IMG/VR virus record: IMGVR_UViG_3300007770_001284
Coordinates: 190,744-254,743 of that record
Reading direction: 5' to 3' (one strand)
Length of the DNA stretch: 64,000 nucleotides
The notes below the pieces were generated by a model. It saw nothing but the letters and a program-made list of their open reading frames with translations, made no database searches and had not been told where the DNA came from. A program made the translations under genes and the position numbers. Of this stretch, positions 35,169-63,756 are shown piece by piece (within the stretch, counting starts at the first letter, position 1; each line of letters opens with the position of its first letter).

Positions 35169-36050
35169 TTATTTTTTGCTTCTTCCAAATAAGCGGCCTC
35201 TTTCTTTTTTCGTTCCACCACCACGTTGTTCCAGTTCCGTTTCGATCCATTTTTTACCAATCGGATTTTTAATAGGTCGATTGACAAATCCACCCACCGC
35301 TTTCTGTACTGCTTCGTCGACAGGGCCGTACACTGTGTTGTCAACAATCGAAATGTTTCCCTGTCCAAATAATCCTTGGAATGCGCCAAGGTTTGCTTGA
35401 ACGTCTGTCCAGATTTCTTCAACTTTTTTCGGCGGCAGCTTTCTTGGTCGGTTCATATTTCTTTCTTGCGCAACCTCAAGCGTTGTGTTGACAAAAATCA
35501 TGTAGGTATCATAGCCAAGTTTTTCCATGGCCTCTTTTTTCTTTTCAATTTTGGCTAGATCATCACCGGTTCCATCGATAATAACACCGAGCCGTGCCGT
35601 TGACTTTGTGTATTGCTGCGTAGCTGCTGTCTTGTATTGTTTTGCTTTCCCTCGAGGTGAGCTGGCAGGTACACCACGTTCATCGTCAAGTCCTAGCTCA
35701 TAAGCTTTTTCGGGATCTTCTCTTGCAATTCTTGCAAGATCGCCTGGGTCGACACCTGCTTCTTCAAGATATTTTTCAAAAGCTGGATCAGAGTTAATAA
35801 TTTTAAGTCCCATGGCCGTCGAAGCCGACAATTCATTTGCGAGGCTTCCGCCAAAGAGCACTTTTGCCGTAAAGCTTTTTCCGCTTCCTGGACCGCCAGC
35901 CATAAAGACAGCTTTAAGAATTCCAGGATCGTAGATACCTTCGCTTAATAATTCTCTGATCGCTTCTCGGAGCGTGATCAGTTCATGCTTTGAAAGCTCT
36001 TCTCTAATAATATACTGTAATTGCTGTTTAGAGACATTTAGCTTTTTCAT
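35169..36050 (-). CDS. Zeta-toxin/AAA_33-like P-loop kinase with leader
   Basis: MAGGPGSGKS, INSD, IIDGTG, EVAQERN; leader KQQLQYIIREEL..LREAIRELLSE. Confidence 0.8.
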   Translation of the reverse strand: MKKLNVSKQQLQYIIREELSKHELITLREAIRELLSEGIYDPGILKAVFMAGGPGSGKSFTAKVLFGGSLANELSASTAMGLKIINSDPAFEKYLEEAGVDPGDLARIAREDPEKAYELGLDDERGVPASSPRGKAKQYKTAATQQYTKSTARLGVIIDGTGDDLAKIEKKKEAMEKLGYDTYMIFVNTTLEVAQERNMNRPRKLPPKKVEEIWTDVQANLGAFQGLFGQGNISIVDNTVYGPVDEAVQKAVGGFVNRPIKNPIGKKWIETELEQRGGGTKKERGRLFGRSKK

Positions 36051-36080
36051 TGCTATTCCATCGCACACATACGCTTTTCA

Positions 36081-36087
36081 TAAATAT
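36081..36087 (-). promoter_or_regulatory. Putative late-promoter motif ATATTTA
   Basis: TAAATAT on the + strand, upstream of the kinase gene. Confidence 0.55.
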
Positions 36088-36116
36088 GCGGTCCGGCCAG
36101 ATAAAAATGCTTAAGC

Positions 36117-37349
36117 TTATAGTCCACCAAGTAATGTAATAGCAATCAACCCTGGAATTCCTTCTTTTACATAGATGCCAGAGAAAACAGTATTTGCTCG
36201 ACCACCGACGTATGAGAATGCTGACTCAAGTCGTCTTCCGACTTCGGGGTCCGAAGCCATGTTATTGTCCACCACCAGCAGCAGTGCACCTGTTTCTGTG
36301 TTTCCGCTTGGTGTAGGACAAGGAGATGAACGCAAGCACCCCTGATAGACAAGAGAACCAAGGTCGTTCCTATTAACATCTCTAACAACTGTGCTTCCGA
36401 TAACCATACGACCTGCTGTGCTCAAGCAGCGCTCCAAGTCCTTTGTATCAAATGTCTGGATTTCTGTATGCTCTGACGCAAGCTTAAAGACTTGCCACAA
36501 AAGCTTAGCAAAGTTTTTATTGGCTACTGGCATCATGTTGAGAAGACCAGTCCTACCACGGAGCAACTGTAATTGTCTCTCGTTGTCTATTACAATATGG
36601 GGGCTAGTGCCTACATCACTCATAAGTGATTGATAATTCGACTTGATAGTGGGGTTGAGAAGCTCTTGAGCTGTTGGTTTCGTTACGATATAGACAACAC
36701 GACCTGCTGCTTCAATTGACTGTAGGTAGCGGCTTAATGAAGAATCTAATTCGTGGCACGCGCTACCGGTTCCTCCACCACCACCGGCGATAACGAATAA
36801 CCAATCGACCTGTCCGATTCGTGTTCGAGCAGCATCTTCAACAAATGCGCTGTTTTCTGCTAACACTTTTTTTCCAAGTGTGATATCTTTTCCAACACCA
36901 TCCGCTCCGGGAACAAGAACAAAATGTTGCGGATCAACTCCGCCCGGCTGGTCCTTTTCAGTTGTGTTAACAAGTATTGTCTTACTGAATCCGAGATCGA
37001 GAAATGCTTTTGCAATTTTCCCTCCCCCTCCGCCAACGCCTATGAATCCACAATTAATAGCTGAAACAGCTGTGTTGTCGGGGAGTAGTCTTTCGTCTGT
37101 GGCCGCGGGATCATCATCGTAGGCCATTACGAAATCAAAATCATCTCCCGCATCTGGGATGTTGATATGTGCATCGTCCGTAGGATTATCGCTTGTTTGC
37201 GCTTGCTCTTCGATAGCTTTGTCATTGTCGGGCATAATTTTTTTTAACCTCTCAGAAATAATAGTGTCTGGGTGTGGCTTTATTTTCTTGTTCTCTTCTA
37301 TGTTGGTGGGTTGTTCTAGTCCAACGCGGTTCCAAGATGTAGAAGCCAT
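36117..37349 (-). CDS. Tubulin/FtsZ-family GTPase (PhuZ/TubZ-like)
   Basis: IGVGGGGGKI, VNT, GVGKD, IAGGGGGTGS; about 95-aa N-terminal extension. Confidence 0.88.
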   Translation of the reverse strand: MASTSWNRVGLEQPTNIEENKKIKPHPDTIISERLKKIMPDNDKAIEEQAQTSDNPTDDAHINIPDAGDDFDFVMAYDDDPAATDERLLPDNTAVSAINCGFIGVGGGGGKIAKAFLDLGFSKTILVNTTEKDQPGGVDPQHFVLVPGADGVGKDITLGKKVLAENSAFVEDAARTRIGQVDWLFVIAGGGGGTGSACHELDSSLSRYLQSIEAAGRVVYIVTKPTAQELLNPTIKSNYQSLMSDVGTSPHIVIDNERQLQLLRGRTGLLNMMPVANKNFAKLLWQVFKLASEHTEIQTFDTKDLERCLSTAGRMVIGSTVVRDVNRNDLGSLVYQGCLRSSPCPTPSGNTETGALLLVVDNNMASDPEVGRRLESAFSYVGGRANTVFSGIYVKEGIPGLIAITLLGGL

Positions 37350-37421: not shown

Positions 37422-37766
37422 TGGTGGAGGCGGCGGGAGTCGAACCCGCGTCCAAAGCAGTTTAGGGATCAAGTCATTCACAGGTTTAGACAGTTTTTCT
37501 AAACTGACAAATCTTCCGCTGGTGAAACCCCCCTGCTCGCGGATACAAGGTTCGAGCATTATTTTATTTCAGTGATGCTACTTCACTTAGCCTAAATTGG
37601 ATAGATGGTTTTAGGCAACCACCCGATTACGCAGCTAGGGCGTATTCGAAGTGATTGTTGTTATTGGCAACTATCTTTTTTGAAACCGCGATTTAGGTCT
37701 GCTGTTTCCTGAGACCACCTGCACTCTTATACTCCTTTGCTACCCTGTCGAAGCCATATCGCCCCC
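37422..37766 (-). ncRNA. ssrA: tmRNA; tag (A)ANNNNHFEYALAA encoded at 37627..37668
   Basis: 5' GGGGGCG...TTCGACAGG; 3' GGGTTCGACTCCCGCCGCCTCCACCA; G3-U70 pair; tag ends ALAA-stop. Confidence 0.95.
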
Positions 37767-37819: not shown

Positions 37820-38575
37820 ATGCCTATACGAAAAATAGTTGCATTTGATTTTGATGACACGCTGGCGGTTACTGAATCGCGAATCGGTGTTCAGCGCCCA
37901 GAGGCAGCTGGAACGTCCTCTCCCACGTTAGAAGACTGGTTGCTAGACCACAATATTCAATATATGGATGTAACGGGTACGGGTGGTAATGAGTTTTATT
38001 GGTTAGATTCTGCAAATTTTGCATTGTATGAAGAGCATGCTGAAGGATTTGAGGATGTGATTGATTACGTTGGGACATCTTCATTTGATGTGAGCAAAGC
38101 TCAAGTGATTACCCCAATGTTAAAAAAGCTGGTTGAAGCAGAATCAGATCCTGATACGCTAGCATTAATCATAACGGCGAGAGCAGGGAAGAAGCAGATG
38201 TACAGTCCGTCTCAGGGAACGTCAGTAAAGCCCTTAAACCGCTCCCAGATCCTTCAGTTCTTAAAAGATAATGGAATCAGCTTTGATGACAGCAGATTAC
38301 ATACAGTGGGTGACCAGGGCTCTAATAGCGCTGCACACAAGGTCAACGTATTGACTGGATATCTAAACAAGTATAAACCAGATGAGTTAATTTTTTATGA
38401 TGATAACGAAAATAATGTAAGGGCAGTTGCTGCATTGTGTAAGCAATTTGCTCCGTCAGTGAAGATATCAGCTTTCCGCGTGGCAGCGGGGTGGATTTCT
38501 TCGGAATCTGGGTGCAATGAAACGGTTAATTTACGCTTGAAAAAGATACTTAGTCGTACAGGCCGCGCTCGTTAG
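37820..38575 (+). CDS. HAD-superfamily phosphatase
   Basis: FDFDDTL, ITAR, K, FYDDNENN. Confidence 0.8.
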   Translation: MPIRKIVAFDFDDTLAVTESRIGVQRPEAAGTSSPTLEDWLLDHNIQYMDVTGTGGNEFYWLDSANFALYEEHAEGFEDVIDYVGTSSFDVSKAQVITPMLKKLVEAESDPDTLALIITARAGKKQMYSPSQGTSVKPLNRSQILQFLKDNGISFDDSRLHTVGDQGSNSAAHKVNVLTGYLNKYKPDELIFYDDNENNVRAVAALCKQFAPSVKISAFRVAAGWISSESGCNETVNLRLKKILSRTGRAR

Positions 38576-38605: not shown

Positions 38606-39145
38606 ATGTCATTATTGCGAGAATATATCAAAGAAATTCTTAATGAAAGCATTGAGTTTCGGACGCTTGATTCTCCCCTTAAGTACAGTCGCGCTTCAGA
38701 TATAAAAAGAATAGCACTTTGCGATACATCGGTAGAAGAACCCCACATGGGCCCTACTGGCAAGCCCAAAATAGATGCATACTTCAACCAAAGACAAGAG
38801 ATGGAATATTATGGCGCTTCGGGTCGACGATTAAAGAAACCGAGAAAGGGCCAGCTGGTTCCCGGGGTTTCTGATGCTTGCGTTATTGGATTTTTAGACT
38901 ACCACAAAGAAGGTGTTTCGTCAGGCGGAAATGATATGTGGTACATTGACTATATGAAGACTCGTGGTGATAAAGGTGGCCAAGGGACTGCCAGCATGCT
39001 GATTGATGAATTTTATAACACTGTTGCCAAACCTGGTGACAACGTTAGTTTTGGTAAGATGATGCGGAAAGAGATCGGTCACCTCAAAGATAAGATGGTA
39101 GACAAGTATCCAGAAGTTAGCACTAGAGGAGCAGTGAATTTCTAA
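38606..39145 (+). CDS. Leader-bearing GNAT-like protein
   Basis: MSLLREYIKEILNES; YIDYMKT...GGQGTASML. Confidence 0.6.
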   Translation: MSLLREYIKEILNESIEFRTLDSPLKYSRASDIKRIALCDTSVEEPHMGPTGKPKIDAYFNQRQEMEYYGASGRRLKKPRKGQLVPGVSDACVIGFLDYHKEGVSSGGNDMWYIDYMKTRGDKGGQGTASMLIDEFYNTVAKPGDNVSFGKMMRKEIGHLKDKMVDKYPEVSTRGAVNF

Positions 39146-39405
39146 TGAAAATCACAAGACGACAGATTAGACAGATCATTGCTGAAGAGCTTGCGCTCGA
39201 TCTTGAGGTTGGAGACATCATACTAACCGGTCGCTTCAAGAACAAGCGAACGGTGGTCAAGAAACTTGGTACCGATGACCTGGGCCAACCGACTGTGAAT
39301 GGCATGAAAGTGTTAGCGTTCAGGATTGAAAAATTGATGCCGAAAGAGAAGTGGAGCAAGAAGACAATCGCCGAACTTGAGAAGGAAGAGGAAGATAAGA
39401 AATGA
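39145..39405 (+). CDS. Leader-bearing small protein
   Basis: MKITRRQIRQIIAEE; LEVGDIILTGRFKNK. Confidence 0.65.
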   Translation: MKITRRQIRQIIAEELALDLEVGDIILTGRFKNKRTVVKKLGTDDLGQPTVNGMKVLAFRIEKLMPKEKWSKKTIAELEKEEEDKK

Positions 39406-40082
39406 GGTTAACTGAATCTGCTTTACGACATTTGATACGCAGAACGTTGTTGGAAAAGAGCTGGGCTGATTTCCAGGCACCCAAGGGAAAGACCATCCCT
39501 ATCGATCCTGCAGATTTTGCAACCAATACTCCGAACGTGCGTGACTTGGATGAAGAAATATTTGACCTGATACAAGTTGCATATCAAGATGTCGAGCTAA
39601 CGCCGGCGTCGGAAGAGGGCCCAGCGACATTTGGCAACATCAAAATTCAAAGTCCAGGGGATCTACCCTATAAATACACTATCATGAAGGGAGCCGACAT
39701 AGACGAAGATCCTGACCCCGATTATTTTCGCGGCGGAAAGATGGTCAAGGGCCGATTCAAGCTGGGCATCGTCGGCCATGATGGAACTCGTGCTGCAATC
39801 GATCGCTATCTCGAAGAGACAGCAGCAGATCTAAGAGCTGGTGCAATTGCAGAGATGTCAGGGAAGATTGCACATATCATGATCACTCGACATGGAGTCC
39901 CTGCAGTTCAGACAGAGGAGGCTGTGGAAGCGATGCTAGGTAAAGAGGTGGACTGGACAGGCCGACATCCTAACGAGAAATATGCGAATAGGTACGGGCC
40001 TGATTATGAGGCTTGGTATTGTCGTGGTATCTCGGGGGCATGCGCCGGAGACCACATGAAGATTCTACTGGGCGGCGGATGA
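39402..40082 (+). CDS. Leader-bearing hypothetical protein
   Basis: MRLTESALRHLIRRTLLEK; DIDEDPDPD, GHDGT. Confidence 0.65.
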   Translation: MRLTESALRHLIRRTLLEKSWADFQAPKGKTIPIDPADFATNTPNVRDLDEEIFDLIQVAYQDVELTPASEEGPATFGNIKIQSPGDLPYKYTIMKGADIDEDPDPDYFRGGKMVKGRFKLGIVGHDGTRAAIDRYLEETAADLRAGAIAEMSGKIAHIMITRHGVPAVQTEEAVEAMLGKEVDWTGRHPNEKYANRYGPDYEAWYCRGISGACAGDHMKILLGGG

Positions 40083-40549
40083 TGCAATTATTGAACGAAT
40101 ATGCAAGAGAGATTATGACATCGCAGGTTGACTCCGGATGTATTGATCTACGTGTACGTGGCTTTAAAGTTAACGCTGAGCTGGCAACAACGACAGAAGC
40201 AAGAAATCGAGGCTTGATGCATAGACAATCGATGAATGAGGATGATGGTATGTTGTTCGTTTTCCCTGACACCGACTATCGTTCATTTTGGATGGAGAAT
40301 ACCTTCATCCCGTTGTCGATTGCTTATCTAACAGAAGCTGGAAAAATTATTAATATAGAGCGGATGCATCCTTTTAACCGAACTTCTGTAAGGTCAACAG
40401 AGCCAGCAAAGTATGCGCTAGAAATGAATGCTGGCTGGTTTAAGAAGCGAGGCGTTCAAGTTGGTGATGTTGTAAGTGGTATTTCTTCCATGAACGAGTC
40501 TATGCTCCGCGAGTACGTAAGAACTTTGCTAATAGAACAGAGCGGGTAA
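40079..40549 (+). CDS. DUF192-family protein with leader-like motifs at both ends
   Basis: RNRGLMHR, GMLFVF, FWMENTFIPLSIAY, YALEMNAGWF. Confidence 0.85.
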   Translation: MMQLLNEYAREIMTSQVDSGCIDLRVRGFKVNAELATTTEARNRGLMHRQSMNEDDGMLFVFPDTDYRSFWMENTFIPLSIAYLTEAGKIINIERMHPFNRTSVRSTEPAKYALEMNAGWFKKRGVQVGDVVSGISSMNESMLREYVRTLLIEQSG

Positions 40550-40552
40550 TTC

Positions 40553-42190
40553 ATGACTCTCCTCCGCGAATGCGTAAAAGAAATGCTTGTAGAAAGTAAT
40601 GTACTTGCTACAGGAATGTGTTTTCCTTTCGCATACCAGAAAGCTGAAGAGTGGTTTAACGATCACTTTACGAAGGCTAAGCCGGGCCGCGGCCCAAAGA
40701 GGCACCCGAACTTAAATGACAAGAGTAAGTTCAAAGTTGTTCATGGTACAGTAACAGATAAGTGGAAGAAGCCGCCGAAGCCAGTTGTTCATGGGTGGGT
40801 TGAAATGGGAGATCTAGTCTTTGATGATCAGACCAGAATAACAAAACCAAATGGTATTGAAAAAGAATTCTATTACGATATGTATCAGCCTGAGGTGTAC
40901 AAGGAGTTCACTGCTGAAGAGGCTATACTCAATTGTGCGATGAAGGGTGGTGAAGGGCCTTGGGATGATGATCTCTATGTGATGATGCAGGACCGTGATG
41001 CATGGATGAATGAAGCGCTACTTCGAGAAGCTACCGCGATTCGTGAGCCGTTAAATCTCTCTGTACCAGAAGACTTGAAAGATATCCACCGTCGTATGCA
41101 GCAAGCGGGAAAAGAATTATATGTCGTTGGAGGTGCTGTTCGTGATGCGTTGATGGGGAAGACTCCCAAAGATTACGATGTCGCTACGAATGCAACTCCA
41201 GACCAGGTGATTCGAATTTTACAGAGCCATGGCAGACTCAGGCTTGACTTAACAGGAAAAGCTTTTGGTGTGGTGAGAGTGAAGACCCCCGACAAAAATG
41301 AATACGAGATTGCAACATTTAGAGAAGATATAGGCCCCGGTCGTCGACCTGAGGGCGTGGCATTCACCAGTATAGAGGGTGATGTAAAAAGACGCGATCT
41401 GACAGTGAACGCGTTGTTCTATGATATGAATACAGGCGAGGTCGTTGATTACGTTGGTGGAATAAAAGACATTGAAGACGGCGTAATTCGAGCCGTTGGA
41501 GATCCAGCCCAACGTTTTGATGAAGACAGGCTACGTATTTTACGTACTATTCGATTCGCAGGCCGAATGGGCGCAGAGCTGGATCCTGCTACAAAGGCTG
41601 CAATTCTTAAAGACAATAGTTTGACTGATGTTAGCCCAGAGCGTATAAGGGAAGAATTTTTGAACGGTGTTAGTTCTGCTGCTAACCTTGATCACTTTAT
41701 AAACCTGATAACAGAACTGGGATTGTTTGAGCAGATATTCCCGGGTCTTCAAATTACACCGCTTTCTGGTACAGCCAGCAATCCGTATGTACAGGTTGCA
41801 GCATTGCTGGGTGATAATGCATCACAAGATACGCAGCAGGTGCTGGAAGAAATGCGTTATTCTCGTAAGCAGATTATTCTTATTAATTTTTTGATTCGAT
41901 TGAAAAGCATCACAAAAGAAACTGCGCCCCAATTAAAGAAGGACTTCATTCGACACAAGATTTCTATTAATGATATTGAGGATTTCGCAGCTGTCACCCC
42001 TCAGCTTTCTGATCGTGTTGTTCAGGGCTTTTTGAAATTTGTTTCAAATCCGCCAGCCAGCAATCCACAAGAGCTAATGGCTCAAGGCCTTGCAGGTGAA
42101 GCAATAGGACAAGCTATGAAGGCAGCTGAGGTTGATGCATATTCGAGTTTGGTTGGCGAGTTAAGGTCGTACATACGGGAGCTATTATGA
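40553..42190 (+). CDS. Fusion: Cys-His-Asp domain plus CCA-adding/poly(A) polymerase family nucleotidyltransferase
   Basis: VGGAVRD, KDYDVAT, RRDLTVNA, EDRLRILRTIRF; N-domain GMCF/HGWVE/FDD. Confidence 0.88.
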   Translation: MTLLRECVKEMLVESNVLATGMCFPFAYQKAEEWFNDHFTKAKPGRGPKRHPNLNDKSKFKVVHGTVTDKWKKPPKPVVHGWVEMGDLVFDDQTRITKPNGIEKEFYYDMYQPEVYKEFTAEEAILNCAMKGGEGPWDDDLYVMMQDRDAWMNEALLREATAIREPLNLSVPEDLKDIHRRMQQAGKELYVVGGAVRDALMGKTPKDYDVATNATPDQVIRILQSHGRLRLDLTGKAFGVVRVKTPDKNEYEIATFREDIGPGRRPEGVAFTSIEGDVKRRDLTVNALFYDMNTGEVVDYVGGIKDIEDGVIRAVGDPAQRFDEDRLRILRTIRFAGRMGAELDPATKAAILKDNSLTDVSPERIREEFLNGVSSAANLDHFINLITELGLFEQIFPGLQITPLSGTASNPYVQVAALLGDNASQDTQQVLEEMRYSRKQIILINFLIRLKSITKETAPQLKKDFIRHKISINDIEDFAAVTPQLSDRVVQGFLKFVSNPPASNPQELMAQGLAGEAIGQAMKAAEVDAYSSLVGELRSYIRELL

Positions 42191-43806
42191 AGATGTATCA
42201 TGCAACCACTCCAGCAAATGCTCGTGATATATTAGCGAACGGTCTTGAGGTTGATGCTACCGGCGAAGCGGGCTATACCCAGGTGCACGCTCAATGGGCA
42301 GACCAGCTTTATGGTATGCGGCCTGTTTTTCTATCTGTTAAAAAGGGAAAATTCGCCGGGATTCCCTTGTTGGTCGACACAGAGGGATTATCCCTTGTAG
42401 CGGATTTAGCAGCTGTCGCAGACCTGGGAGACGAGCCCCCCAGCTTGGATGGAGATGAACTTATTTGGTGGGATGGAATCGGTCCAGAAGAATTATCCCC
42501 TATAGCAAGTGACGGCGCGGTCAATATAGAAAATTTGCTTGTTCCCGGAAGTAGGGAAGCCAAGTTAGCAATTGCAGTTACGGGAACAGCGGCAGTGTTG
42601 GAAGATATTCCGCCTGATAGAATCAAGATTGCTTCATATAATGAAGCTTTCCTACGCGAGTATGTAAGAGAGGTGTTGAGCGAAGAAGTGGAACGCCAAA
42701 CGGTGGGAAGCGTTTTAGACGCTTTAGGAGCGATAAAGGGCGTCGATGATGAAGCCCAGCGCAAAGAGCGTATGAAAAAGCTTGCTAAGAAAATTGGTTG
42801 GGAAATGGTCAAATTCATTCCTGTGGTTGGAAAAGGAATCAAGATGGCCAAGACAATCGGTGATATTTACAAATTAGCAAAAGACACTCCCGATGATCTG
42901 GCCACGAAAGACAACGTCGTTCTAGACATGCTGGATGTTGATGATAAGTATCAGCAAATGTTGGATGATCGGCTTGAAGCTGCATTCGATGAGGTCGTGA
43001 TTCCTTGGCTCGAAAGCCTTCCACCAGATGCTCCACTCCCTGACATGAATAATAAATTGGAGGCTTGGGTTAATCAAAATTTCGATGAGCGAGGAATCCA
43101 CGGCGCAGCCGGGGGTGTACCAGCTAGTTCATCTCCTGTAATGAAGCAAGAAAATGTCGAGTTATCGTTGCGTCAGTACGTAAGGACAATGTTGGAGGCC
43201 GGTGAACTTGGTCGGCAAATATTTTCTGATAGGGCTCCGCTGGGACGTCATATGGGATCCGAAAGAGACACAGAGCTAGAGGGAGAAATTTGGACGGCAT
43301 TATGGGGTCACCTGCAAGGCCTTAGTTCAAAAGTGCCTACAAACTTGCTAGATGCGATGGTAAGTTTTTCCAAAGATCCAGCTTATAACGACGTTTTCAT
43401 ACTACATACGAGTGGCGACGCCTACCGCGGCATGGAAGTTTCACAAGAATACTTGGATGAACACGCGCCTGGCTGGAAAGAAGCAACATGGCCAACATCG
43501 AAACTTCACTGGCAGTGGTCTGATGTTATCCCGGTTGATTTCGAATATCAAAACCGGAATGAATCAAGAACAGTGTCTTCATGGACTCCATCAAGAGACG
43601 TGGCCGAGCAATTCGGTCGAGCCGGACACGGTATGGTGGGAGTAGTTTTAATCGCAGATTCGGCAACGAATACGTTTCTTGACTTGAAGGAATTGTACAG
43701 ATTCGATCGTCTAGACGACTTTCATTGGGAAGAGGAGATCGTCGGATTTGGTTCCGTTCGAGTTAAGGGAATTAAAATCTTGAAGAAACTCGGGGGGCTC
43801 GGATGA
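42187..43806 (+). CDS. Multidomain protein: H-type ART-like, helical module and R-S-E ADP-ribosyltransferase
   Basis: MYHAT/VFLS; AYRG, SSWT, EEE; two internal LREYVRE-type linkers. Confidence 0.7.
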   Translation: MKMYHATTPANARDILANGLEVDATGEAGYTQVHAQWADQLYGMRPVFLSVKKGKFAGIPLLVDTEGLSLVADLAAVADLGDEPPSLDGDELIWWDGIGPEELSPIASDGAVNIENLLVPGSREAKLAIAVTGTAAVLEDIPPDRIKIASYNEAFLREYVREVLSEEVERQTVGSVLDALGAIKGVDDEAQRKERMKKLAKKIGWEMVKFIPVVGKGIKMAKTIGDIYKLAKDTPDDLATKDNVVLDMLDVDDKYQQMLDDRLEAAFDEVVIPWLESLPPDAPLPDMNNKLEAWVNQNFDERGIHGAAGGVPASSSPVMKQENVELSLRQYVRTMLEAGELGRQIFSDRAPLGRHMGSERDTELEGEIWTALWGHLQGLSSKVPTNLLDAMVSFSKDPAYNDVFILHTSGDAYRGMEVSQEYLDEHAPGWKEATWPTSKLHWQWSDVIPVDFEYQNRNESRTVSSWTPSRDVAEQFGRAGHGMVGVVLIADSATNTFLDLKELYRFDRLDDFHWEEEIVGFGSVRVKGIKILKKLGGLG

Positions 43807-45611
43807 GCTTGCTTCGAGAATATGTTAACGTCCCTCCAGAGGAAGAACTCCACCCAAGTCAGATGAAGACTGTCGGTGAGATCTTGGATCTTATCGAACG
43901 TATCCAAGAAGAAACAGACGAAGCCGGCCGTCGGGTGCGTAGTGCAAATGTCGGGATTGAATTCATAAAGATCGCCATGGGGGAGATACCACTCGTTGGT
44001 GGTGCGCTTGGTGCCGCAGATGGATTATTTGCCATGTACCAAGCGGGGAAGAATGAGGAACACACCTGGGCCGAGCTGGAAGAGTATCCCATTCTGGCTC
44101 GGATGAAGATGCACCCTTCTTTGGCCAAACACCTCGATCCTGTAACACTGAAAGAAATTGATAAAGCATATCAGGGCTATCTTCAGGGTCTTGGTCGCGA
44201 GACGCTAGTCAGCGAAATCACAGATATCGATAATTTTACGCATGATTGGATTATGGGTGATACAGACAGCAAGCTTAGCGTGGAGCTCCTACGTGAGTAC
44301 GTAAGAGAACAATTTCTACTTGAAAGAGAGGAAGCAGAAGCGTCCCTGCTTTCAGGGGTGAGTGACTTTATAGAGACTCGTCATTATGATGACGTGTTAG
44401 ATGCTGCGTTTAAACGCATAGCCCCTGGTTTAGTTCGTCATGTCATGGAGCAAGAAATCAACGAGGATGTTGCTGAATTTCTTGATGGCGCAATAGAGGG
44501 TCGGTGGGAGAAACAAAAAGGGTGGTCTTTTGAAGATCCAAGTCCAAAACAGTTGGGTCACTCTGAGGATTCTGCCGATTACATATTGGGGTACTCATGG
44601 GGCTGGAATAATGCAGACTCGTGGGAAGGTAATCGATTGCCGACCCAAGCCAGGAAAGAAGCAGTTGAGGCGCAGATCGCAGAATTTGAAGATCAAATAT
44701 CTGAGCAGATGGTCATTGCGGCGCTGGAAACTGCCAATGAAAAGGTTAACCCCGTTAAGCTCATCAAAAAGGCAATTGGTGCAATTCGTAGTGCAGTTCG
44801 GGAAGAGGGTCTTTCTGGTGGCCTCAAAAAGGGCTTGCCTATCGCGATAGGAATTATTGTAGGGGAGGCACTCGATAATTTTATTATACCCATGGCATTC
44901 TTTTCGATGACCGGCATTCCCATCCCTCCGCTTCCGATTGGAGTGGGGGAAATCATTAATCCCGTAGTGATCAGTATGGTCGGTGCCGATATAGAGTCAG
45001 ACGAACTAGTTGATGAGCTAGGGTGGTACGAGGAAGAGTACGGAGAGGCATCTTCGCTGGGTCCTCGAGAGACGAACGAGTTACGTGCGTATATACGAGA
45101 AGCGTTACTTACAGAGTATTGGCCTGCCCGTACAGAGGGCAAGAAAAATGTCTGGCGTGGCATGAAGATCAAGATGTCACCAGCTATTTTGGCTTCAAAG
45201 GTCCGTCAGTACATTAAGACTGGCGAAGAGAAAGGAATTACGCAGCAAGAATTGATAAGATTTTTGCTTGGCCGTCTTGAGGGCGAAAGTACGGGTGCAT
45301 CATGGTCGCTCAGCTTTGATGTTGCTGTTAGTTTTGCAGATGCCTGGGGAGCAACAAACCGTGGCGCCGAACTCCACGTCATATTTCAAGCCACGGTCGA
45401 TGAAGAAGCTGGATACGATCCTCAGGCTGCAGGCGAAGAGCCCGGCTTGTTTTACGATGAGGCAGAAGTAAGGTTTAAGCCTGGCGCTGAGATACCTCTC
45501 ACTGGAATTTACGTCTTTATCAAGTCTAAGGATCAGTGGGCCAAGCAAAGGACTCAGTTCCGGCCTCTAATGATAAAGGCAGAAGACAATCCGATGATGG
45601 TAAAGGCATGA
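43803..45611 (+). CDS. Multidomain protein: helical module, unknown module and R-S-E ADP-ribosyltransferase
   Basis: VWRG, ASWSLSFDVAVSF, EAE; three leader motifs. Confidence 0.7.
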   Translation: MSLLREYVNVPPEEELHPSQMKTVGEILDLIERIQEETDEAGRRVRSANVGIEFIKIAMGEIPLVGGALGAADGLFAMYQAGKNEEHTWAELEEYPILARMKMHPSLAKHLDPVTLKEIDKAYQGYLQGLGRETLVSEITDIDNFTHDWIMGDTDSKLSVELLREYVREQFLLEREEAEASLLSGVSDFIETRHYDDVLDAAFKRIAPGLVRHVMEQEINEDVAEFLDGAIEGRWEKQKGWSFEDPSPKQLGHSEDSADYILGYSWGWNNADSWEGNRLPTQARKEAVEAQIAEFEDQISEQMVIAALETANEKVNPVKLIKKAIGAIRSAVREEGLSGGLKKGLPIAIGIIVGEALDNFIIPMAFFSMTGIPIPPLPIGVGEIINPVVISMVGADIESDELVDELGWYEEEYGEASSLGPRETNELRAYIREALLTEYWPARTEGKKNVWRGMKIKMSPAILASKVRQYIKTGEEKGITQQELIRFLLGRLEGESTGASWSLSFDVAVSFADAWGATNRGAELHVIFQATVDEEAGYDPQAAGEEPGLFYDEAEVRFKPGAEIPLTGIYVFIKSKDQWAKQRTQFRPLMIKAEDNPMMVKA

Positions 45612-46625: not shown

Positions 46626-47266
46626 ACCTGCTTCGCGAATATATCCGAGCTCTGCTCACCGAAGCTGCCAAGACCGTGGAAGATCTTCCTGAGGGTGCTT
46701 TCGTGACAATACTAAAAAGGTACGGCGGTTCATCAGTGTTCGTATACATCGGCGATGAGAAGGGAAATCGGTGGAGGACTAGAGAGGAGCACGGGGAGAG
46801 GTATGATAATTCCATACACGCAGGAATAGAAATTGCCAAGCCAAGACCGTCAGAGACCGGACCTTGTGGCGATGCATTCGTGGTGGAAGGTTCTGGAGCA
46901 ACTCACGGTTGGGGTCCGTTAGTATATGATGTTGCAATTGAGTACGCATCGCTTGACGGATCTGGCGGCTTAATTTCAGATAGAAGTTCGGTTTCTCCTT
47001 ATGCTCGACGTGTATGGGAATACTATATGAACAACCGACCGGACGTCACAGCGCATCAATTAGATGACATGAAAGATACGCTAACTCCAGAATGGGAAGA
47101 TAACTGCCAGCAGTGGATAGCCATGAAGACAACGGTACCAGCATTCACCGCAGAAAAATCTGATGATACTCGCTGGGTTGATTCACCGCTCAGTAAGAGA
47201 TACACGGCACCTCCCAAAACCATCGATGCGCTTCGTGCAGCTGGAAAACTGGTGGAGATTGAATAA
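46622..47266 (+). CDS. Leader-bearing GNAT-like protein
   Basis: MNLLREYIRALLTEA; GWGPLVY, SPYARRVW. Confidence 0.6.
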   Translation: MNLLREYIRALLTEAAKTVEDLPEGAFVTILKRYGGSSVFVYIGDEKGNRWRTREEHGERYDNSIHAGIEIAKPRPSETGPCGDAFVVEGSGATHGWGPLVYDVAIEYASLDGSGGLISDRSSVSPYARRVWEYYMNNRPDVTAHQLDDMKDTLTPEWEDNCQQWIAMKTTVPAFTAEKSDDTRWVDSPLSKRYTAPPKTIDALRAAGKLVEIE

Positions 47267-47730
47267 TGAACCTTCTCCGTGAATACATAAGCGAGCTTTT
47301 GACAGAGATAAATCTTGGTCAGGGCTATGGGATAGAATATACAGCATTTGTTCTGGACGACGCGTCACATCAGAAGCTAGCCGCTTTTGCTCCCGAAGGC
47401 TGGAAAGTCTTTGCTCATCACATGACGATTATTAATCCACCCAACCAGAAATTACGGTTACCGTCGCAATGGCTTGACCAAGACCTTTGCGTGAGAGTCG
47501 TGGGAATTGCACAATCGGCTCAGGTCATGACTGCGCTAGTTGATCTGGAAGGATTACCTCTTCCGATGAAGGGACCAGAATATCCTCACATCACTATTGC
47601 TACGAATCCAGCAGAGGGTGGCAAGCCTGCGATGTCTAATTGGAAGTTTAAGCCAGTTATCGATAAGCATAATTTTGAGGCTATTACCTCAATCGTTGTG
47701 TGCGGCAGAATAGAGGAAATATTAAGGTGA
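47266..47730 (+). CDS. Leader-bearing 2H phosphoesterase
   Basis: MNLLREYISELLTE; HHMTI and PHITI (two HxT motifs). Confidence 0.75.
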   Translation: MNLLREYISELLTEINLGQGYGIEYTAFVLDDASHQKLAAFAPEGWKVFAHHMTIINPPNQKLRLPSQWLDQDLCVRVVGIAQSAQVMTALVDLEGLPLPMKGPEYPHITIATNPAEGGKPAMSNWKFKPVIDKHNFEAITSIVVCGRIEEILR

Positions 47731-48401
47731 GCTTACTTCGCGAATACATCAGTGAGGTGCTGCAAGTGACTGCTCGAGTGCAACCCGAGTCCCAGATATT
47801 CTGTGACATGGACGGCGTTTTGGTAAATTTTGAAGATATGATTGTGAGATTTATCAACGGTCTTTTGGGCGGTGGCATCTCTCCAGGGATTGAAATTACG
47901 AAGGGTTACGAGAAGAGGCTAGCAAAAGTACGCGGAGAGCTCGGTCCAGATTGGCGCGCAAAGGGTCGTCCTGATTTAGATATTAAGTCGGTTCGAAATT
48001 TTATGATGGGTGCTGTTGGAGCAAATCCTGGTCCTATATTTGCTGAGATGAAGCCACATGCTGACGCTCTGGAAAAACTTTGGCCATTTCTGACGGGGAC
48101 TGGTCGGACTGTGAATATACTGACTGCTGAAATTAGGGCGAGAGAGGGAGCTGTTATGACAACGGCCGAAGGGAAGGAATTGTGGATACACAGGTGGCTT
48201 AAGCCTCAACCTTCTCAAATTATTATGTCACCAGCCAAACAGAAAGCCAGGTATGCAACGACCAACGGCATTCCCAACATACTTATTGATGATAAACTTA
48301 CGACCGTCGACAGCTGGAATGCCGCCGGCGGAATTGGTATCTGGCATCTGCCGGGCGGAAGCGTAGACACTGTGGAACAGCTAAAGGAATTGGGCGTATG
48401 A
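47727..48401 (+). CDS. Leader-bearing HAD 5'(3')-nucleotidase-like protein
   Basis: GTG-SLLREYISEVL; FCDMDGVL, ILT, K, LIDDK. Confidence 0.8.
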   Translation: MSLLREYISEVLQVTARVQPESQIFCDMDGVLVNFEDMIVRFINGLLGGGISPGIEITKGYEKRLAKVRGELGPDWRAKGRPDLDIKSVRNFMMGAVGANPGPIFAEMKPHADALEKLWPFLTGTGRTVNILTAEIRAREGAVMTTAEGKELWIHRWLKPQPSQIIMSPAKQKARYATTNGIPNILIDDKLTTVDSWNAAGGIGIWHLPGGSVDTVEQLKELGV

Positions 48402-54691: not shown

Positions 54692-54767
54692 GGGCCGTTA
54701 GCTCAACAGGTAGAGCAAAAGACTTTTAATCTTTAGGTTCAGGGTTCGAGTCCCTGGCGGCTCACCA
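54692..54767 (+). tRNA. tRNA-Lys(TTT)
   Basis: Cloverleaf, anticodon loop CTTTTAA, encoded CCA. Confidence 0.92.
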
Positions 54768-55487: not shown

Positions 55488-55491
55488 CTGT

Positions 55492-58589: not shown

Positions 58590-58665
58590 GCCTCCTTAGC
58601 TCAGTGGATAGAGCACCGGCCTTCTAAGCCGTAGGTCGCAGGTTCGAATCCTGCAGGGGGTGCCA
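58590..58665 (+). tRNA. tRNA-Arg(TCT)
   Basis: Cloverleaf, loop CTTCTAA, encoded CCA. Confidence 0.92.
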
Positions 58666-58684: not shown

Positions 58685-58843
58685 ATGGCAAGGAATTTTT
58701 TAAGCTCAAGTAGGTTTAGCTTGTTTTGTGCGGTCTTGAATGTCGCATTTGCCCTACAGGCGTTTTCACACGGTAGCTGGATATTTGGAGCGATTTGCAC
58801 AGTTTTTGCATGCCTTTGCTTTAGCAATTACAAGCGTGCATAA
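58685..58843 (+). CDS. Small two-TM protein (52 aa, not in the ORF track)
   Basis: TAATG overlap with tdk. Confidence 0.5.
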   Translation: MARNFLSSSRFSLFCAVLNVAFALQAFSHGSWIFGAICTVFACLCFSNYKRA

Positions 58844-59397: not shown

Positions 59398-59406
59398 GGA
59401 GTAATT

Positions 59407-59844
59407 GTGATTGGGCGAAATAAGACGATTGGAATAATAGCTGGAAATTTTGATGTAATTCATCCAGGATATATTCGATATTTTCGTGATGCAAAAGAAA
59501 ATGCCTGTGAACACTTGATTATTGCACTTCACGTTGACCCCACTGTTGAAAACACTGATAAGTTTCCACCTGTTTTAACTGTTGAGGAAAGAACAGAGAT
59601 CTTGATGGCGATCAAGTATGTTGACGAAGTTGTGTGTTACGATACAGAAGCAGACTTACTTAACACTCTAAAGATAGTCAAACCCAGCGTCCGTGTTCTT
59701 GGGTCAGATTATCAGGGCAAGCGATATACGGGTGACGATCTTGGAATTCCCGTTTATTATCACGTTCGTGACCACGATTGGTCAACGACAAAATTTAAGA
59801 ATGAGATAGCAGATCAGGTCATAAAACAAAAAAAGTTATGGTGA
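59407..59844 (+). CDS. Cytidylyltransferase (TagD/RfaE-like)
   Basis: GNFDVIHPGY, ERTEIL..IKYVDEV, GSDY, STT. Confidence 0.85.
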   Translation: MIGRNKTIGIIAGNFDVIHPGYIRYFRDAKENACEHLIIALHVDPTVENTDKFPPVLTVEERTEILMAIKYVDEVVCYDTEADLLNTLKIVKPSVRVLGSDYQGKRYTGDDLGIPVYYHVRDHDWSTTKFKNEIADQVIKQKKLW

Positions 59845-61755: not shown

Positions 61756-61799
61756 TTCTTTCTCCCGTACGTGTGTATATGCGCTCTTTGGAGCATATA

Positions 61800-61821
61800 A
61801 TACTTATCAAACCATAAATAT
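61800..61821. promoter_or_regulatory. Pair of late motifs: ATACTTA (+, 61800-61806) and ATATTTA (-, 61815-61821)
   Basis: In the 90-bp gap between divergent genes. Confidence 0.55.
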
Positions 61822-61845
61822 CCTATAGGGACGGAGTTTAGAAAT

Positions 61846-63756
61846 ATGGGTGCTCTCGGTGGACATATGGCTCATCTTCATGAGTCGCTAGAATTAACAT
61901 TTAGTGAGCTTTCAGATATCCTTGCTCGCGTCGCTGATGCTGATATAGAGGCAACTGAAAAGGTAGACGGTCAGAACCTCTTCTTGACAGTCAATCAAGC
62001 TGGTGACGTTCAAACAGCTCGTAACGCTGGAGACCTTAAAAAGGGTGGTATGACGCCAGAAGAATTTGCAAGCAAGTGGGCAGGCCATCCTGCAGAGGGT
62101 GCTTTCACAAAGGGGTTCGAAGCGATTAAGCAGGCTATTTCTACCCTGGGTCCTACTGCACAAGTACTTTTTGCGGACGGCGCAAGATATGTCAATATGG
62201 AAGTGATGTATCCAGGTAACCCTAATTTAATTGTATACGATGCGGGAAGTGTGGTACTGCACAACTTCAACACCTTCGACCCGGCTGGTGAGCCTGTGGA
62301 CGACCCTGATGCCAGGGCAGCATTTCAAGAATTCTCCACAGCGTTAGATGCGGCAGAAATAGACGTTGACGGTGAAACATGGACTGTGTGGGGGCCAGTT
62401 GCAGTTCAATTAGAACAACTTGCTTCAGGTGAGCCGCTGGCAGAAGTGCAGGAAGCTATAGCTCGAATTGCTTCTCCTGTAGGGATGGATGCTACCCTGG
62501 AGGATTTAGCGGAGCTCCGCTTGAGGGCAACTGCAGAACGTGGAGGTATTCCCGAAGACAGAATTCAAGATGTTCTCGATGCTGCTTTTCAACGTCCGGG
62601 TGCTAAAAAAATAATTGCGATTAAGAAGGGCTTGCCCAAAGACCAGCAAAAGCTTGTTTCAAAGCTCGGCGCAAAGGCAAATGCATACTCTGCTATTTCT
62701 GCTACATTACGTCCTCTTGAGCTGGCGATTAACGATTTTGCCATTGAAGTTCTCAGGGGAATGGAAAGCTTTTTTGTTTCGGACACTGATACAGAGCTAC
62801 AGCGACAGAGGGCTGAACTCCAGGGTGCGATTGATTTTCTTGAAGGGCTAGCTGGATCCGGTGACGAAAAAATTGGTGCGCTGGTAGATAAGCAGCTTGA
62901 GAAACTTAAGAACATTGAAGATGTTGCTTCGACTATGGAGGGGATTGTTTTCGAGCACCCCCCGGGTAGTGGTAATTTAAAAAAGCTGACAGGCACATTC
63001 GCTATGGCAAACCAGCTTGTTGGGGGAGCTAGAAGAAAAGGGTGGACCCCAGAAGAACCACAGGAAGAATCTTTGTTACGTGGTTACGTAAGAGACCTGA
63101 TTTATGAAGCTATTTCGAGCGAGCAGCCTCACGGCTCTGATCATCGGGTAGGCTTGATTCCAGTTTCTGGCAAGCCGTACCACGCGGGGCACCACTATCT
63201 TGTGGAAAGAGCAGCTAGAGAGAACGATGAAGTAGTTCTTTTTGTGTCTACATCAAACAGACTAAGGAAGGGTCAATTTCCAATTTATGGCGCTGACATG
63301 AAGCGAGTGTGGCAGGAAGAGCTCGAACGAATTATGCCATCGAATGTTACTGTTGAATATGGCGGAAGCCCAGTGAGGAAGGTATACGACTTGATTGGAG
63401 ATGCATGTCAGGTCGGAGAGGGTCTAGAAACGTATGTTGTTTATTCAGACCCTACTGATACAAGCTTAAATTACCCTCCCGAAAGTCGAGACAAGTATAT
63501 GCAACCGCTGTGTGATGAAGGGCGAGTTATTTTCGCGGCAGAAGAAAACCCTGAGGCCTTCAGTCGTGGACAGGGTTCTCCCGATGTAAGTGGAACAGCG
63601 ATGAGGCAAGCCCTTCAGGACGGTAACTTTAAGGAGTTTGCGGTATCAATGCCAGCTGGGGTGAATGCTCAGAATATATGGAATATTCTTACAAAGGTTA
63701 ACGAGAGCCACAAGAGGGTTTCTTTGAGCGAAGCTATCTTTGGTGGAACGTTCTGA
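61846..63756 (+). CDS. ATP-dependent (RNA) ligase-like domain fused to a HIGH-family nucleotidyltransferase
   Basis: TEKVDGQN, MEV, EGIVF, KLTG; linker EESLLRGYVRDLIYE; KPYHAGH, SGTAMR. Confidence 0.65.
   Translation: MGALGGHMAHLHESLELTFSELSDILARVADADIEATEKVDGQNLFLTVNQAGDVQTARNAGDLKKGGMTPEEFASKWAGHPAEGAFTKGFEAIKQAISTLGPTAQVLFADGARYVNMEVMYPGNPNLIVYDAGSVVLHNFNTFDPAGEPVDDPDARAAFQEFSTALDAAEIDVDGETWTVWGPVAVQLEQLASGEPLAEVQEAIARIASPVGMDATLEDLAELRLRATAERGGIPEDRIQDVLDAAFQRPGAKKIIAIKKGLPKDQQKLVSKLGAKANAYSAISATLRPLELAINDFAIEVLRGMESFFVSDTDTELQRQRAELQGAIDFLEGLAGSGDEKIGALVDKQLEKLKNIEDVASTMEGIVFEHPPGSGNLKKLTGTFAMANQLVGGARRKGWTPEEPQEESLLRGYVRDLIYEAISSEQPHGSDHRVGLIPVSGKPYHAGHHYLVERAARENDEVVLFVSTSNRLRKGQFPIYGADMKRVWQEELERIMPSNVTVEYGGSPVRKVYDLIGDACQVGEGLETYVVYSDPTDTSLNYPPESRDKYMQPLCDEGRVIFAAEENPEAFSRGQGSPDVSGTAMRQALQDGNFKEFAVSMPAGVNAQNIWNILTKVNESHKRVSLSEAIFGGTF

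Follow-up and report, generated by a model that had tools for sequence, protein, structure and literature searches.

The closest described counterparts of the locus are the internal proteins (IPs) and Alt of bacteriophage T4. In T4 the capsid-targeting propeptide (CTS) directs diverse proteins into the head, gp21 cleaves after Glu, and Alt, an ADP-ribosyltransferase (ART), is packaged, cleaved at its two ends and then injected (PMC9026906, PMC5694885, PMC3012670). In the T4 record the IPs have a common short N-terminal tag ending I-A-E. Polyvalent proteins, known from phages and conjugative elements, and the ejection proteins of giant phages of the phiKZ/SPN3US type likewise bring many enzymatic domains (ART, GNAT, peptidases) in with the DNA, and prohead protease processing again takes place after Glu (PMC7824862, PMC5694885). 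The common repertoire of jumbo phages includes a standalone SAK-type HAD, a 2H phosphoesterase, a polynucleotide kinase and a CCA-adding enzyme, together with numerous tRNAs and RNA ligases of the ATP-grasp type (Iyer et al. 2021, PMC7824862). What, then, is to be made of a phage locus in which enzymes of both kinds carry the same short peptide?

The phage carrying the window (the whole stretch of 64,000 nucleotides analysed here) is a T4-like, Kyanoviridae-related marine jumbo phage with a genome of 255 kb, in a record whose completeness is estimated at only 75%. Its head module, ordered terminase-portal-protease-scaffold-capsid, encodes a prohead protease of the T4 gp21 type (Peptidase_S77, 2.3e-25) and a gp23-type capsid protein (Gp23, 1.4e-66); it is thus T4-type and not, as in giant phages of the phiKZ/SPN3US type, phiKZ-type. 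The N-terminus of the small protein adjoining the protease is similar to the leader of the window. Five tRNA genes lie in the window and four of them, like the tmRNA gene, already encode CCA, which favours a repair role for the CCA-adding enzyme over one in maturation.

The leader itself is real and non-random: 22 PSSM matches of at least 11 bits occur genome-wide, against 2.05 in shuffles, and the strong matches all fall inside the window, at 35.9-63.1 kb. It is 14-16 residues long, amphipathic with a heptad-like pattern, and comes in a type A form, starting M-K-I-T-K-R-Q-L-R, and a type B form approximating L-L-R-E-Y-I-R-E-x-L-x-E. About 14 of 17 copies terminate in [L/I/M]-x-E, an end that fits a T4-like capsid-targeting propeptide, and two copies (47727 and 43803) are missing the terminal Glu. 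The copies have a mean residue identity of 54% and a third-codon-position identity of 35%, with the same codon at only 36% of identical residues; residues are kept while codons have diverged, and therefore selection acts on the peptide and not on the DNA. Copies are found at N-termini, between domains inside ORFs and at the C-termini of two proteins (DUF192 40079 and CCA 40553), and they tag some 20 cassettes at 38.6-50.5 kb. The leader is specific neither to repair enzymes nor to N-termini: the earlier note had described a repair kit as nearly all leader-tagged, and the leader does stand on several repair-type enzymes, but also on ART-like, GNAT-like, DUF192 and uncharacterised domains.

Positions 38606-50521 form a single tightly coupled operon (~13 kb) with ATGA or GTGA overlaps at most junctions. 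Its cassettes, each a leader and then an enzyme domain, are separate ORFs or in-frame fusions and are shuffled among related phages (Table 1). The tRNA-end enzymes of the array are the CCA-adding enzyme, the 2H phosphoesterase and two HAD phosphatases, and its further members include two ART-like domains. The ART, GNAT and Cys-His assignments, drawn from motifs and faint matches, are weak ones. For instance, ORF 42187-43806, which had no match in the Pfam search, ends in a domain with ADP-ribosyltransferase-type motifs (R / S-x-S / E-x-E), and its Atlas model gives weak ART structure matches. The C-terminal cassette of 43803, also ART-like, has R28, S76-W-S78 and E129-x-E131 as invariant residues; its homologues are stand-alone ORFs in 11 of 12 aligned cases (177-179 aa, leader at the start), whereas in this phage it is fused. 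In a syntenic locus, L012, both an ART cassette and the 38606-type domain are placed behind other domains with the leader between, and a type-A leader stands at the start of each of six successive small ORFs in the array there. The DUF192 protein has a weak N-terminal leader and a strong C-terminal copy (nt 40496-40540), and the CCA ORF runs from leader through a Cys...His...Asp domain (residues ~18-150) and the CCA enzyme to a shortened copy (nt 42155-42187), the next ORF beginning via an ATGA overlap. These C-terminal copies do not fit an N-terminal propeptide and may be shuffling scars or Alt-like C-terminal processing sites.

Table 1. Features of the window discussed in the text.
Feature	Position	Strand	Remarks
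P-loop kinase	35169..36068	-	Pfam Zeta_toxin/AAA_33; resembles T4 Pnk kinase domain
HAD phosphatase, SAK/PNKP type	37820..38575	+	DxDxT at residue 10; without leader
First array cassette	38606..39145	+	Leader + weakly GNAT-like domain
Two small/medium ORFs (39145-39405, 39402-40082)	39145..40082	+	Type-A-like leaders; uncharacterised domains
DUF192 protein	40079..40549	+	Pfam DUF192 1.4e-32
CCA-adding enzyme, class II	40553..42190	+	PolyA_pol head 9e-37 + RNA-binding domain
Three-domain ORF	42187..43806	+	Internal leaders nt 42646 and 43162
Three-domain ORF	43803..45611	+	Degenerate N-terminal leader; internal leaders nt 44280 and 45075
Leader-tagged single-domain ORF	45608-46159	+	Uncharacterised domain
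Leader-tagged single-domain ORF	46143-46625	+	GNAT, weak
Leader-tagged single-domain ORF	46622-47266	+	Uncharacterised domain
2H phosphoesterase	47266..47730	+	Leader + two H-x-T motifs
HAD phosphatase, NT5C type	47727..48401	+	Leader minus final Glu; phrog_2643 6.4e-16
HAD_SAK_1 phosphatase ORF	48398..50521	+	HAD_SAK_1 1.7e-15
tRNA-Lys(UUU) gene	54692..54767	+	Phage-encoded; context only
Ligase-like covalent nucleotidyltransferase + NadD/PPAT/NMNAT-like NTase	61846..63756	+	KxDG motif; weak RNA-ligase fold signals

Seven of these genes had been read as a complete-looking and nearly all leader-tagged tRNA repair kit. Each of the seven reading frames is open at the coordinates of Table 1, their families hold, with uneven support, and the kit is complete-looking only in the sense that each activity has a candidate. 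The leader is N-terminal in four of the seven (kinase, CCA enzyme, 2H protein, HAD 47727), internal only in 48398 (nt 49781) and 61846 (nt 63061), and absent from HAD 37820. In hhalign (E 8.5e-5, probability 60%) the family profile of the kinase aligns with residues 3-165 of T4 PseT, and the P-loop, IN-x-D and RN-xx-R motifs fall in register. The gene sits 2.5 kb upstream of the array, its tandem leaders, type A then type B (nt 35972), abut the conserved core, and the leader recurs in nearly all of the top 120 of more than 6000 marine homologues. HAD 37820 has weak HAD_SAK_1/DUF2608 matches, a match to the PHROG 'polynucleotide kinase' family (2.7e-9) and an orthologue of 68% identity in L012. 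For HAD 47727, as for its relatives, the match is to the family of NT5C deoxyribonucleotidases. ORF 48398 consists of a HAD domain (residues 1-170), an uncharacterised middle domain, the leader and a C-terminal viral domain with H-E-x-x-H, and its Atlas structure matches the HAD_SAK_1 cluster at TM 0.92 and the HAD_PNKP cluster at TM 0.82. The only Pfam signal of the 2H protein is a sub-threshold tRNA_lig_CPD (E 0.012), and a comparison with T4 57B gave no similarity.

Gene 61846 joins a ligase-like domain (residues 1-400; invariant K39-x-D-G-x-N, E119, E365-G-x-V-F-E and K380) to a HIGH nucleotidyltransferase (NTase; residues 432-618) that is NadD/NMNAT/PPAT-like (Z 12.6). A leader-like helix (nt 63061-63110, residues 406-423) lies within the inter-domain linker, which has low confidence in the AF2 model. 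The ligase-like half gives weak RNA-ligase signals in fold and profile; it was not detected as an Rnl1 or Rnl2 Pfam member, and hhalign against T4 RnlA was not significant. The rest of the record, rated 75% complete, yielded no canonical ligase for DNA or RNA, and so the domain could be a replicative DNA ligase.

Set beside T4 Pnkp (PseT) and Rnl1, the phage has the same kinase motifs, DxDxT HAD phosphatases of the PNKP/SAK type and a KxDG ligase-like domain; it differs in that kinase and phosphatase are separate genes, that the whole set is dispersed, that 2H and CCA enzymes are added, and that the ligase-like domain is fused to an NTase. The three chemistries of fungal and plant Trl1 (ligase, P-loop kinase and 2H CPDase) also recur, tRNA_lig_CPD included, and the model of the ligase domain gives a weak alignment to Trl1 LIG structures in which the lysine region of motif I is in register. 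However, the proteins here are separate, every match is weak (E 0.012; Z 5-6), and no Tpt1 was identified in this phage. The enzyme types are those of jumbo-phage RNA repair sets, although neither a shared leader nor an ART/GNAT effector array is described in that survey (Iyer et al. 2021, PMC7824862). Among relatives, L004 and L005 encode the 2H domain (the orthologue of 47266), a leader-like linker and the CCA enzyme as one protein ending in a leader-like peptide, and one Atlas match has tRNA_lig_CPD fused to HAD_SAK_1. HAD 47727 homologues adjoin the kinase in Melnitz and in Pelagibacter phage HTVC008M, where ligase-like gene, kinase, NTase and HAD are clustered and the ORF between ligase-like gene and kinase matches the core of 39145. 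Such fusion or adjacency supports the view that several RNA-end-healing-type enzymes are functionally tied together.

The reading preferred here, at even odds (a probability of about 0.5), is that the leader-tagged array encodes capsid-targeted modules, cleaved by the gp21-type protease and injected with the DNA, tRNA-end enzymes among them. The leader would do here what the capsid-targeting propeptide does for the T4 IPs and Alt and carry each module into the prohead core, where cleavage after its terminal Glu would strip the tag and split fused modules, the mature enzymes then passing into the host together with the DNA. The tRNA-end subset would remove 3'-phosphates or 2',3'-cyclic phosphates, add phosphate to 5'-OH ends and restore CCA, and the 61846 ligase-NTase may be a candidate for sealing breaks in RNA or DNA. 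We infer packaging, cleavage and the RNA substrates of the tagged enzymes from likeness to T4: in both cases diverse, fast-evolving proteins have as sole common part a short tag ending hydrophobic-x-Glu, ART-type enzymes are among them, and the loci are hyperplastic, varying between relatives (PMC9026906, PMC3012670). The leader end is moreover of the L-x-E type cut by gp21 in T4 head proteins (PMC9026906), and gp21- and gp23-family proteins are present in this phage. In contrast to T4, there are about 20 cassettes and not 3-4, the cargo is mostly large enzymes, including the tRNA-end ones, and the tag is also C-terminal or, like a polyprotein linker, inside multidomain proteins; the T4 proteins are packaged, whereas those of this array are predicted to be. 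From polyvalent and ejection proteins it differs in that its domains are divided among numerous coupled ORFs bearing one common tag, instead of being parts of a single giant protein.

Several observations speak against packaging. The leader differs from the T4 CTS in sequence and in length (10 residues in T4), two copies end without Glu, and the array lies ~85 kb from the head module. Enrichment of the T4 late-promoter consensus was looked for and none was seen, and HTVC008M has the gp21-type protease but almost no leader motif. Neither HAD 37820 nor the ligase gene has an N-terminal tag.

How do other explanations fare? The earlier note had proposed a single, complete pathway of healing and sealing, made up of the seven enzymes and virion-delivered against anticodon nucleases such as PrrC. 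This stands in part, given the repair-type enzymes, the protease, the capsid protein and the leader end, as well as the tag on kinase, 2H protein, CCA enzyme and one HAD. The window also encodes tRNA-Lys(UUU), the species cleaved by PrrC, and T4 PseT and RnlA are annotated as a tRNA repair pair for prr hosts. As a whole it is nevertheless unlikely: the tag is not kit-specific, being borne by many unrelated domains, the sealing enzyme and HAD 37820 have no N-terminal copy, the genes are scattered across 28 kb, and the ligase-like domain, which gave no significant hhalign alignment to T4 RnlA, may act on RNA or on DNA. The T4 pseT and rnlA products, moreover, are made after infection, and to our knowledge T4 has no packaged RNA repair enzyme. 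Equally doubtful is the proposal that the enzymes have free nucleotides, NAD+ or nucleotides of immune signalling as substrates and not broken RNA. The 2H protein would then degrade cyclic oligonucleotides like T4 Acb1, the NT5C-type HAD would be a nucleotidase, the kinase would phosphorylate nucleosides or small molecules, and the HIGH NTase would serve as an NMN adenylyltransferase. The NT5C and NadD/NMNAT/PPAT matches fit this, small-molecule kinases do occur in the Zeta_toxin family, and in jumbo phages 2H and NAD+ salvage systems are known that counter host signalling (PMC7824862). It sits poorly with the fusion of 2H to the CCA enzyme in relatives, the alignment of the kinase to T4 polynucleotide kinase, the HAD_SAK_1 and HAD_PNKP structural matches and the dissimilarity between the 2H protein and T4 57B.

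Other explanations concern the leader alone. It might serve as a flexible linker, or as a helix for docking or oligomerisation, that assembles a cytoplasmic multi-enzyme complex or recruits the enzymes to a common hub after infection; the amphipathic pattern, the internal and C-terminal copies and its conservation directly ahead of the kinase core in thousands of homologues are in keeping with this. Yet it is improbable in that it leaves the conserved [L/I/M]-x-E, the similar leader on the head-module protein and the likeness to the T4 hyperplastic IP loci unexplained, and has no candidate hub protein. That the leader is a functionless trace of recent duplication or recombination among neighbours is already disfavoured and highly improbable. 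Its copies are clustered, and the shortened ones at ORF ends resemble recombination scars, but residues are kept while synonymous positions have become close to random, the domains that follow the leaders are mutually unrelated, and the leader is conserved in homologues down to ~50% identity.

If the capsid-targeting reading is true, this phage may inject ready-made enzymes alongside its DNA, and the internal-protein strategy of T4 would be extended to enzymes of the RNA-repair type.

The operon between 38606 and 50521 is a hyperplastic array of cassettes, each of which consists of a leader peptide of 14-16 residues and a domain, present either as a separate open reading frame (ORF) or fused in frame to its neighbours, with ATGA or GTGA overlaps joining the cassettes. 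The leader occurs in two forms. Type B, close to L-L-R-E-Y-I-R-E-x-L-x-E, starts the ORFs at 38606, 40553, 43803, 45608, 46143, 46622, 47266 and 47727, with a much weaker copy at the start of ORF 40079, and type A, beginning M-K-I-T-K-R-Q-L-R, heads those at 39145 and 39402 as well as a number of small proteins from other parts of the genome; the two forms stand in tandem, type A plus type B, before the core of the kinase at 35169. A PSSM scan of the genome finds 22 leader sites against 2.05 in shuffled sequence, with all of the strong sites lying within 35.9-63.1 kb of the window, and (L/I/M)-x-E closes about 14 of 17 copies. Between copies 54% of residues are identical as against 35% of third codon positions, and the leader is therefore conserved as a peptide. 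An account at the level of the DNA, as a repeat or a recombination signal, is ruled out by this scrambling of synonymous positions.

The leader is also found inside proteins, where its copies mark the borders between domains: in ORF 42187 (nt 42646 and 43162), ORF 43803 (nt 44280 and 45075), ORF 48398 (nt 49781) and ORF 61846 (nt 63061). The DUF192 protein and the CCA enzyme each carry a further copy at the C-terminus. In relatives the same cassettes are found alone or in another order. For instance, the domain behind nt 45075 occurs elsewhere as a stand-alone protein of 177-179 residues beginning with the leader, and in a syntenic 290-kb ENA contig (L012) both the 38606 domain and this 45075 domain, which is ADP-ribosyltransferase (ART)-like, sit behind other domains with the leader in between, and six neighbouring small ORFs all begin with the type A form. 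Since the leader lies at domain borders and the cassettes are stand-alone or re-ordered in relatives, the unit of evolution is the leader together with its domain.

What does this peptide label? The earlier note had described an RNA repair kit that is nearly all leader-tagged, yet the tag is no label of such a kit, because the cargo of the array mixes unrelated domains under the same tag: DUF192 (1.4e-32), weakly GNAT-like and ART-like domains, a Cys...His...Asp domain that precedes the CCA enzyme within ORF 40553, and, within ORF 48398, a widespread viral domain with H-E-x-x-H, besides several domains that have no family assignment. The two ART-like domains carry, in order, the R, S-x-S and E-x-E motifs of the ADP-ribosyltransferase type, which are invariant in 13 aligned sequences of the 45075 cassette family; BLASTP of the two against each other aligns only the S-x-S region, and the paralogous domain gives weak Atlas structure matches. 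There is no Pfam match to the ART-like domain and none in the PDB to the ART-like cassette profile, Pfam scans of the excised ART-like, Cys-His and 48398 middle domains are likewise without a match, and the remaining tagged proteins fall into no named family in PHROG scans.

The seven genes that had been proposed to heal and seal tRNA are all ORFs at their positions. The kinase at 35169, a putative polynucleotide 5'-kinase that would act on 5'-OH ends of RNA or DNA, carries the motifs of the T4 Pnk clade, namely a P-loop, a catalytic Asp after it and RxxxR. A family profile of 20 sequences aligns to residues 3-165 of T4 PseT (hhalign E 8.5e-5, at a probability of only 60%), with the P-loop, the catalytic Asp of IN-x-D and RN-xx-R in register, and the invariant columns are G58-K64 in the P-loop, N92-S93-D94 and R203/R207/R209. 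The corresponding kinases of the phages Melnitz and HTVC008M begin with 9-residue peptides that end in L-x-E-G and recall the T4 capsid-targeting sequence in both length and style. With respect to the HAD phosphatases, DxDxT and the family profiles point most clearly to 48398 as a predicted PNKP/SAK-type enzyme: the ORF begins with DxDxT, matches HAD_SAK_1 at 1.7e-15 and superposes with Atlas models of HAD_SAK_1 (TM 0.92) and HAD_PNKP (TM 0.82). The 37820 protein is a weaker member of this kind, with DxDxT present and weak profile matches, and by both profile and relatives 47727 fits the NT5C nucleotidases better than the PNKP/SAK type. The putative 2H phosphoesterase matches the CPD domain of fungal tRNA ligase (Pfam tRNA_lig_CPD) at E 0.012, weaker than the cut-off; its similarity to T4 57B is not significant, and a sequence search found no match in cultured phages. 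Single-sequence PDB searches gave no match for the 2H protein and nothing useful for the kinase, the ligase-like protein or the 707-residue protein.

The CCA enzyme at 40553 is of class II, with a PolyA_pol head (9.2e-37), an RNA-binding domain (1.6e-7) and a match to the PHROG tRNA nucleotidyltransferase at 5.8e-57. As CCA is already encoded by four of the five tRNA genes of the window and by the tmRNA gene, it is more plausibly a repair than a maturation enzyme. The end of its ORF looks like a one-time in-frame fusion that has been split by a change of frame. Among the RNA genes, a CAT-anticodon tRNA and the TilS-like ATPase beside it may be a tRNA-Ile2/lysidine synthetase pair, and the true start of the TilS-like ORF is probably farther downstream, because the called start overlaps the tRNA.

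Marine homologues of the ligase-like gene at 61846 number more than 550. Even in homologues only 41% identical, residues 1-400 keep invariant K39-x-D41-G42-x-N44, E119 in a motif III-like position, E365-G366-x-V368-F369-E and the motif V K380, so that motifs I (KxDG), III, IV and V of covalent nucleotidyltransferases are recognisable in the sequence. The fold was modelled at pLDDT 74, and the model aligns weakly to the nucleotidyltransferase domain of the DNA ligase of ASFV (Z 6.2) and to three structures of the Trl1 tRNA ligase LIG domain (Z 5.0-5.7), alignments in which residue 40 of the model sits opposite chain residues 149-152. About 15 of the top 50 BFVD matches are named RNA ligase (E 0.007-0.2), and 8 of 18 homologues touch Pfam RNA_ligase (PF09414) weakly. 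PF09414, PF09511 and PF01068 have no match anywhere in the genome record, nor do the canonical Rnl1, Rnl2, RtcB and ATP-dependent DNA ligase profiles. Given these weak fold and profile matches and the lack of a canonical ligase profile in the record, RNA and DNA are both candidate substrates. Kinship of the family with T4 RnlA was not significant by hhalign, and the only PDB profile matches of the domain, to helicases, proved spurious, being confined to a helical insert. The C-terminal half is a HIGH nucleotidyltransferase resembling NadD, PPAT and NMNAT (Z 12.6), and in the structural model the leader motif forms a helix inside the disordered linker that joins the two folded halves.

Several links in relatives bring these enzymes together. 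In two IMG/VR relatives a 2H domain of 69% identity forms the N-terminal part of a fusion with the CCA enzyme; an NT5C-type HAD directly follows the kinase in Melnitz; and HTVC008M has a string made up of the KxDG protein DUF6267, a small protein akin to that of ORF 39145, the kinase and a cytidylyltransferase-like protein, with a HAD slightly beyond. Atlas structure searches tie DUF6267, and fusions of DUF6267 with a cytidylyltransferase, to the 61846 ligase-like domain, and there are viral clusters in which tRNA_lig_CPD is fused to HAD_SAK_1. Such links support, but do not prove, that the kinase, HADs, 2H protein and CCA enzyme would act at the ends of RNA, especially tRNA. Jumbo phages commonly carry RNA repair gene sets of this sort (PMC7824862, section 3.4.9).

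The source record, a single IMG/VR virus sequence of 254,743 bp that is rated 75% complete and of which the window is the final 64 kb, includes a head module of T4 type, which runs terminase, portal, gp21-family protease (nt 144949-145575 of the record; PF03420, 2.3e-25), scaffold-like protein (nt 148008-149774) and gp23-family capsid protein (PF07068, 1.4e-66). A 143-residue protein adjoining the protease begins with a related form of the type A leader. A search with the kinase identifies two members of the Kyanoviridae, Methylophilales phage Melnitz and Pelagibacter phage HTVC008M, as the closest cultured relatives of the phage, with more remote kinase matches in the jumbo phages Atu_ph07 and RsoM2USA; megablast, blastn and tblastn found no match in cultured phages for the region, the protease or the tubulin-like gene. 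The L012 contig has the chaperonin, sigma factor, deformylase, kinase and tubulin-like gene in common with the window. A tubulin-like gene is unusual for a T4-type phage, as opposed to a phiKZ-type one.

Features of the window and of related phage loci
Feature	Position	Strand	Remarks
GroEL-like chaperonin, sigma-70 family factor, peptide deformylase	27833-32262 and 34333-34959		Assigned through Pfam matches of L012 orthologues; also a weak HD_4 (RelA/SpoT-type hydrolase) match
P-loop kinase	35169-36068	-	Zeta_toxin and AAA_33 matches
Tubulin-like gene	36117-37349	-	410 residues; Tubulin/FtsZ GTPase match below threshold (7.3e-5); adjoins the kinase in L012 too (conserved)
Phage tmRNA	37422-37766	-	Rfam 124 bits; between tubulin-like gene and untagged HAD 37820; tag peptide of 13 residues ending ALAA; gene ends in encoded CCA
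End of CCA enzyme	42155-42190		Terminates within a leader copy, just short of its final x-E; next ORF (42187) lacks a leader of its own and overlaps by ATGA
Putative 2H phosphoesterase	47266		154 residues; two H-x-T motifs
Trypsin-like serine peptidase	51324-52052	-	Trypsin_2 9e-18; signal-like hydrophobic N-terminus; directly after the array, on the opposite strand
PP-loop ATPase, TilS-like	53598-54306	+	ATP_bind_3 1.8e-33; begins within or just 3' of the CAT-anticodon tRNA
tRNA-Lys(UUU), Asn(GUU), Arg(UCU), Leu(UAA)	54692-54884, 58590-58665, 63890-63977		CCA encoded in each but tRNA-Asn, where CCT follows
Thymidine kinase, then small cytidylyltransferase-like protein	58843-59844	+	7.8e-31 and 5.4e-12; the latter a second HIGH nucleotidyltransferase besides the 61846 fusion
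Conserved pelagiphage-type myovirus string	HTVC008M 104818-111718; Melnitz 65855-67154		DUF6267, Pnk-like kinase, cytidylyltransferase-like protein, NT5C HAD; all annotated hypothetical

The system that the array most resembles is that of the T4 internal proteins, which, as read in the T4 record, have in common a 10-residue capsid-targeting sequence ending in I-A-E. In T4 this sequence places the internal proteins on the scaffolding core, and the gp21 protease cleaves behind Glu; the internal proteins are injected, as is the ADP-ribosyltransferase Alt, which loses a piece from either end, and the internal-protein loci differ between relatives (PMC9026906, PMC5694885, PMC3012670). The likeness extends to the gp21-type protease of this phage, to a common short N-terminal peptide ending in hydrophobic-x-Glu on unrelated proteins, and to the composition and plasticity of the array. 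By analogy, the leader would bring each module into the prohead as a loading tag and would double as a cleavable linker, with a cut by the gp21-type protease separating the fused modules. To this inferred reading of the leader we give a probability of about one half. Matches to the T4 late promoter TATAAATA number 5 in the window, where 2.7 would be expected, and 7 in the whole genome, none of them preceding a called gene; the promoter therefore provides no evidence on timing.

More tentative is the wider proposition that, in a marine T4-like jumbo-phage lineage, this one peptide of 14-16 residues as both capsid-loading tag and protease-cleavable linker has turned an operon of about 20 shuffled enzyme cassettes into a toolkit that is made beforehand and injected, which would include Alt-like ARTs and the first packaged tRNA-end repair enzymes (CCA, 2H, HADs and Pnk-like kinase). 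The complete, virion-delivered pathway against PrrC that the earlier note envisaged, after the precedent of T4 Pnkp and Rnl1, is unlikely, though partly supported: its seven genes are real and links in relatives support a role at RNA ends for the kinase, HADs, 2H protein and CCA enzyme, but the tag is not specific to repair enzymes. The array is better viewed as a probable variant of the T4 internal-protein strategy, one that overlaps the known RNA repair repertoire of jumbo phages.

If the loading-tag reading is true, abundant ocean phages have enlarged the capsid-targeting strategy of T4 into a modular system that delivers whole enzymes, and RNA repair could start at injection, ahead of any phage gene expression. 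The tag would also be a simple sequence handle with which to predict, across thousands of contigs from uncultured marine phages, the proteins that are injected; more than 6000 relatives belong to the kinase family alone, with the leader seen in nearly all of the top 120. It is also a candidate for a natural tag by which cargo could be loaded into phage capsids. Finally, the conserved pairings of 2H with CCA enzyme, kinase with HAD and ligase-like domain with nucleotidyltransferase point to unstudied pathways of tRNA 3'-end and break repair in pelagiphage-like viruses.
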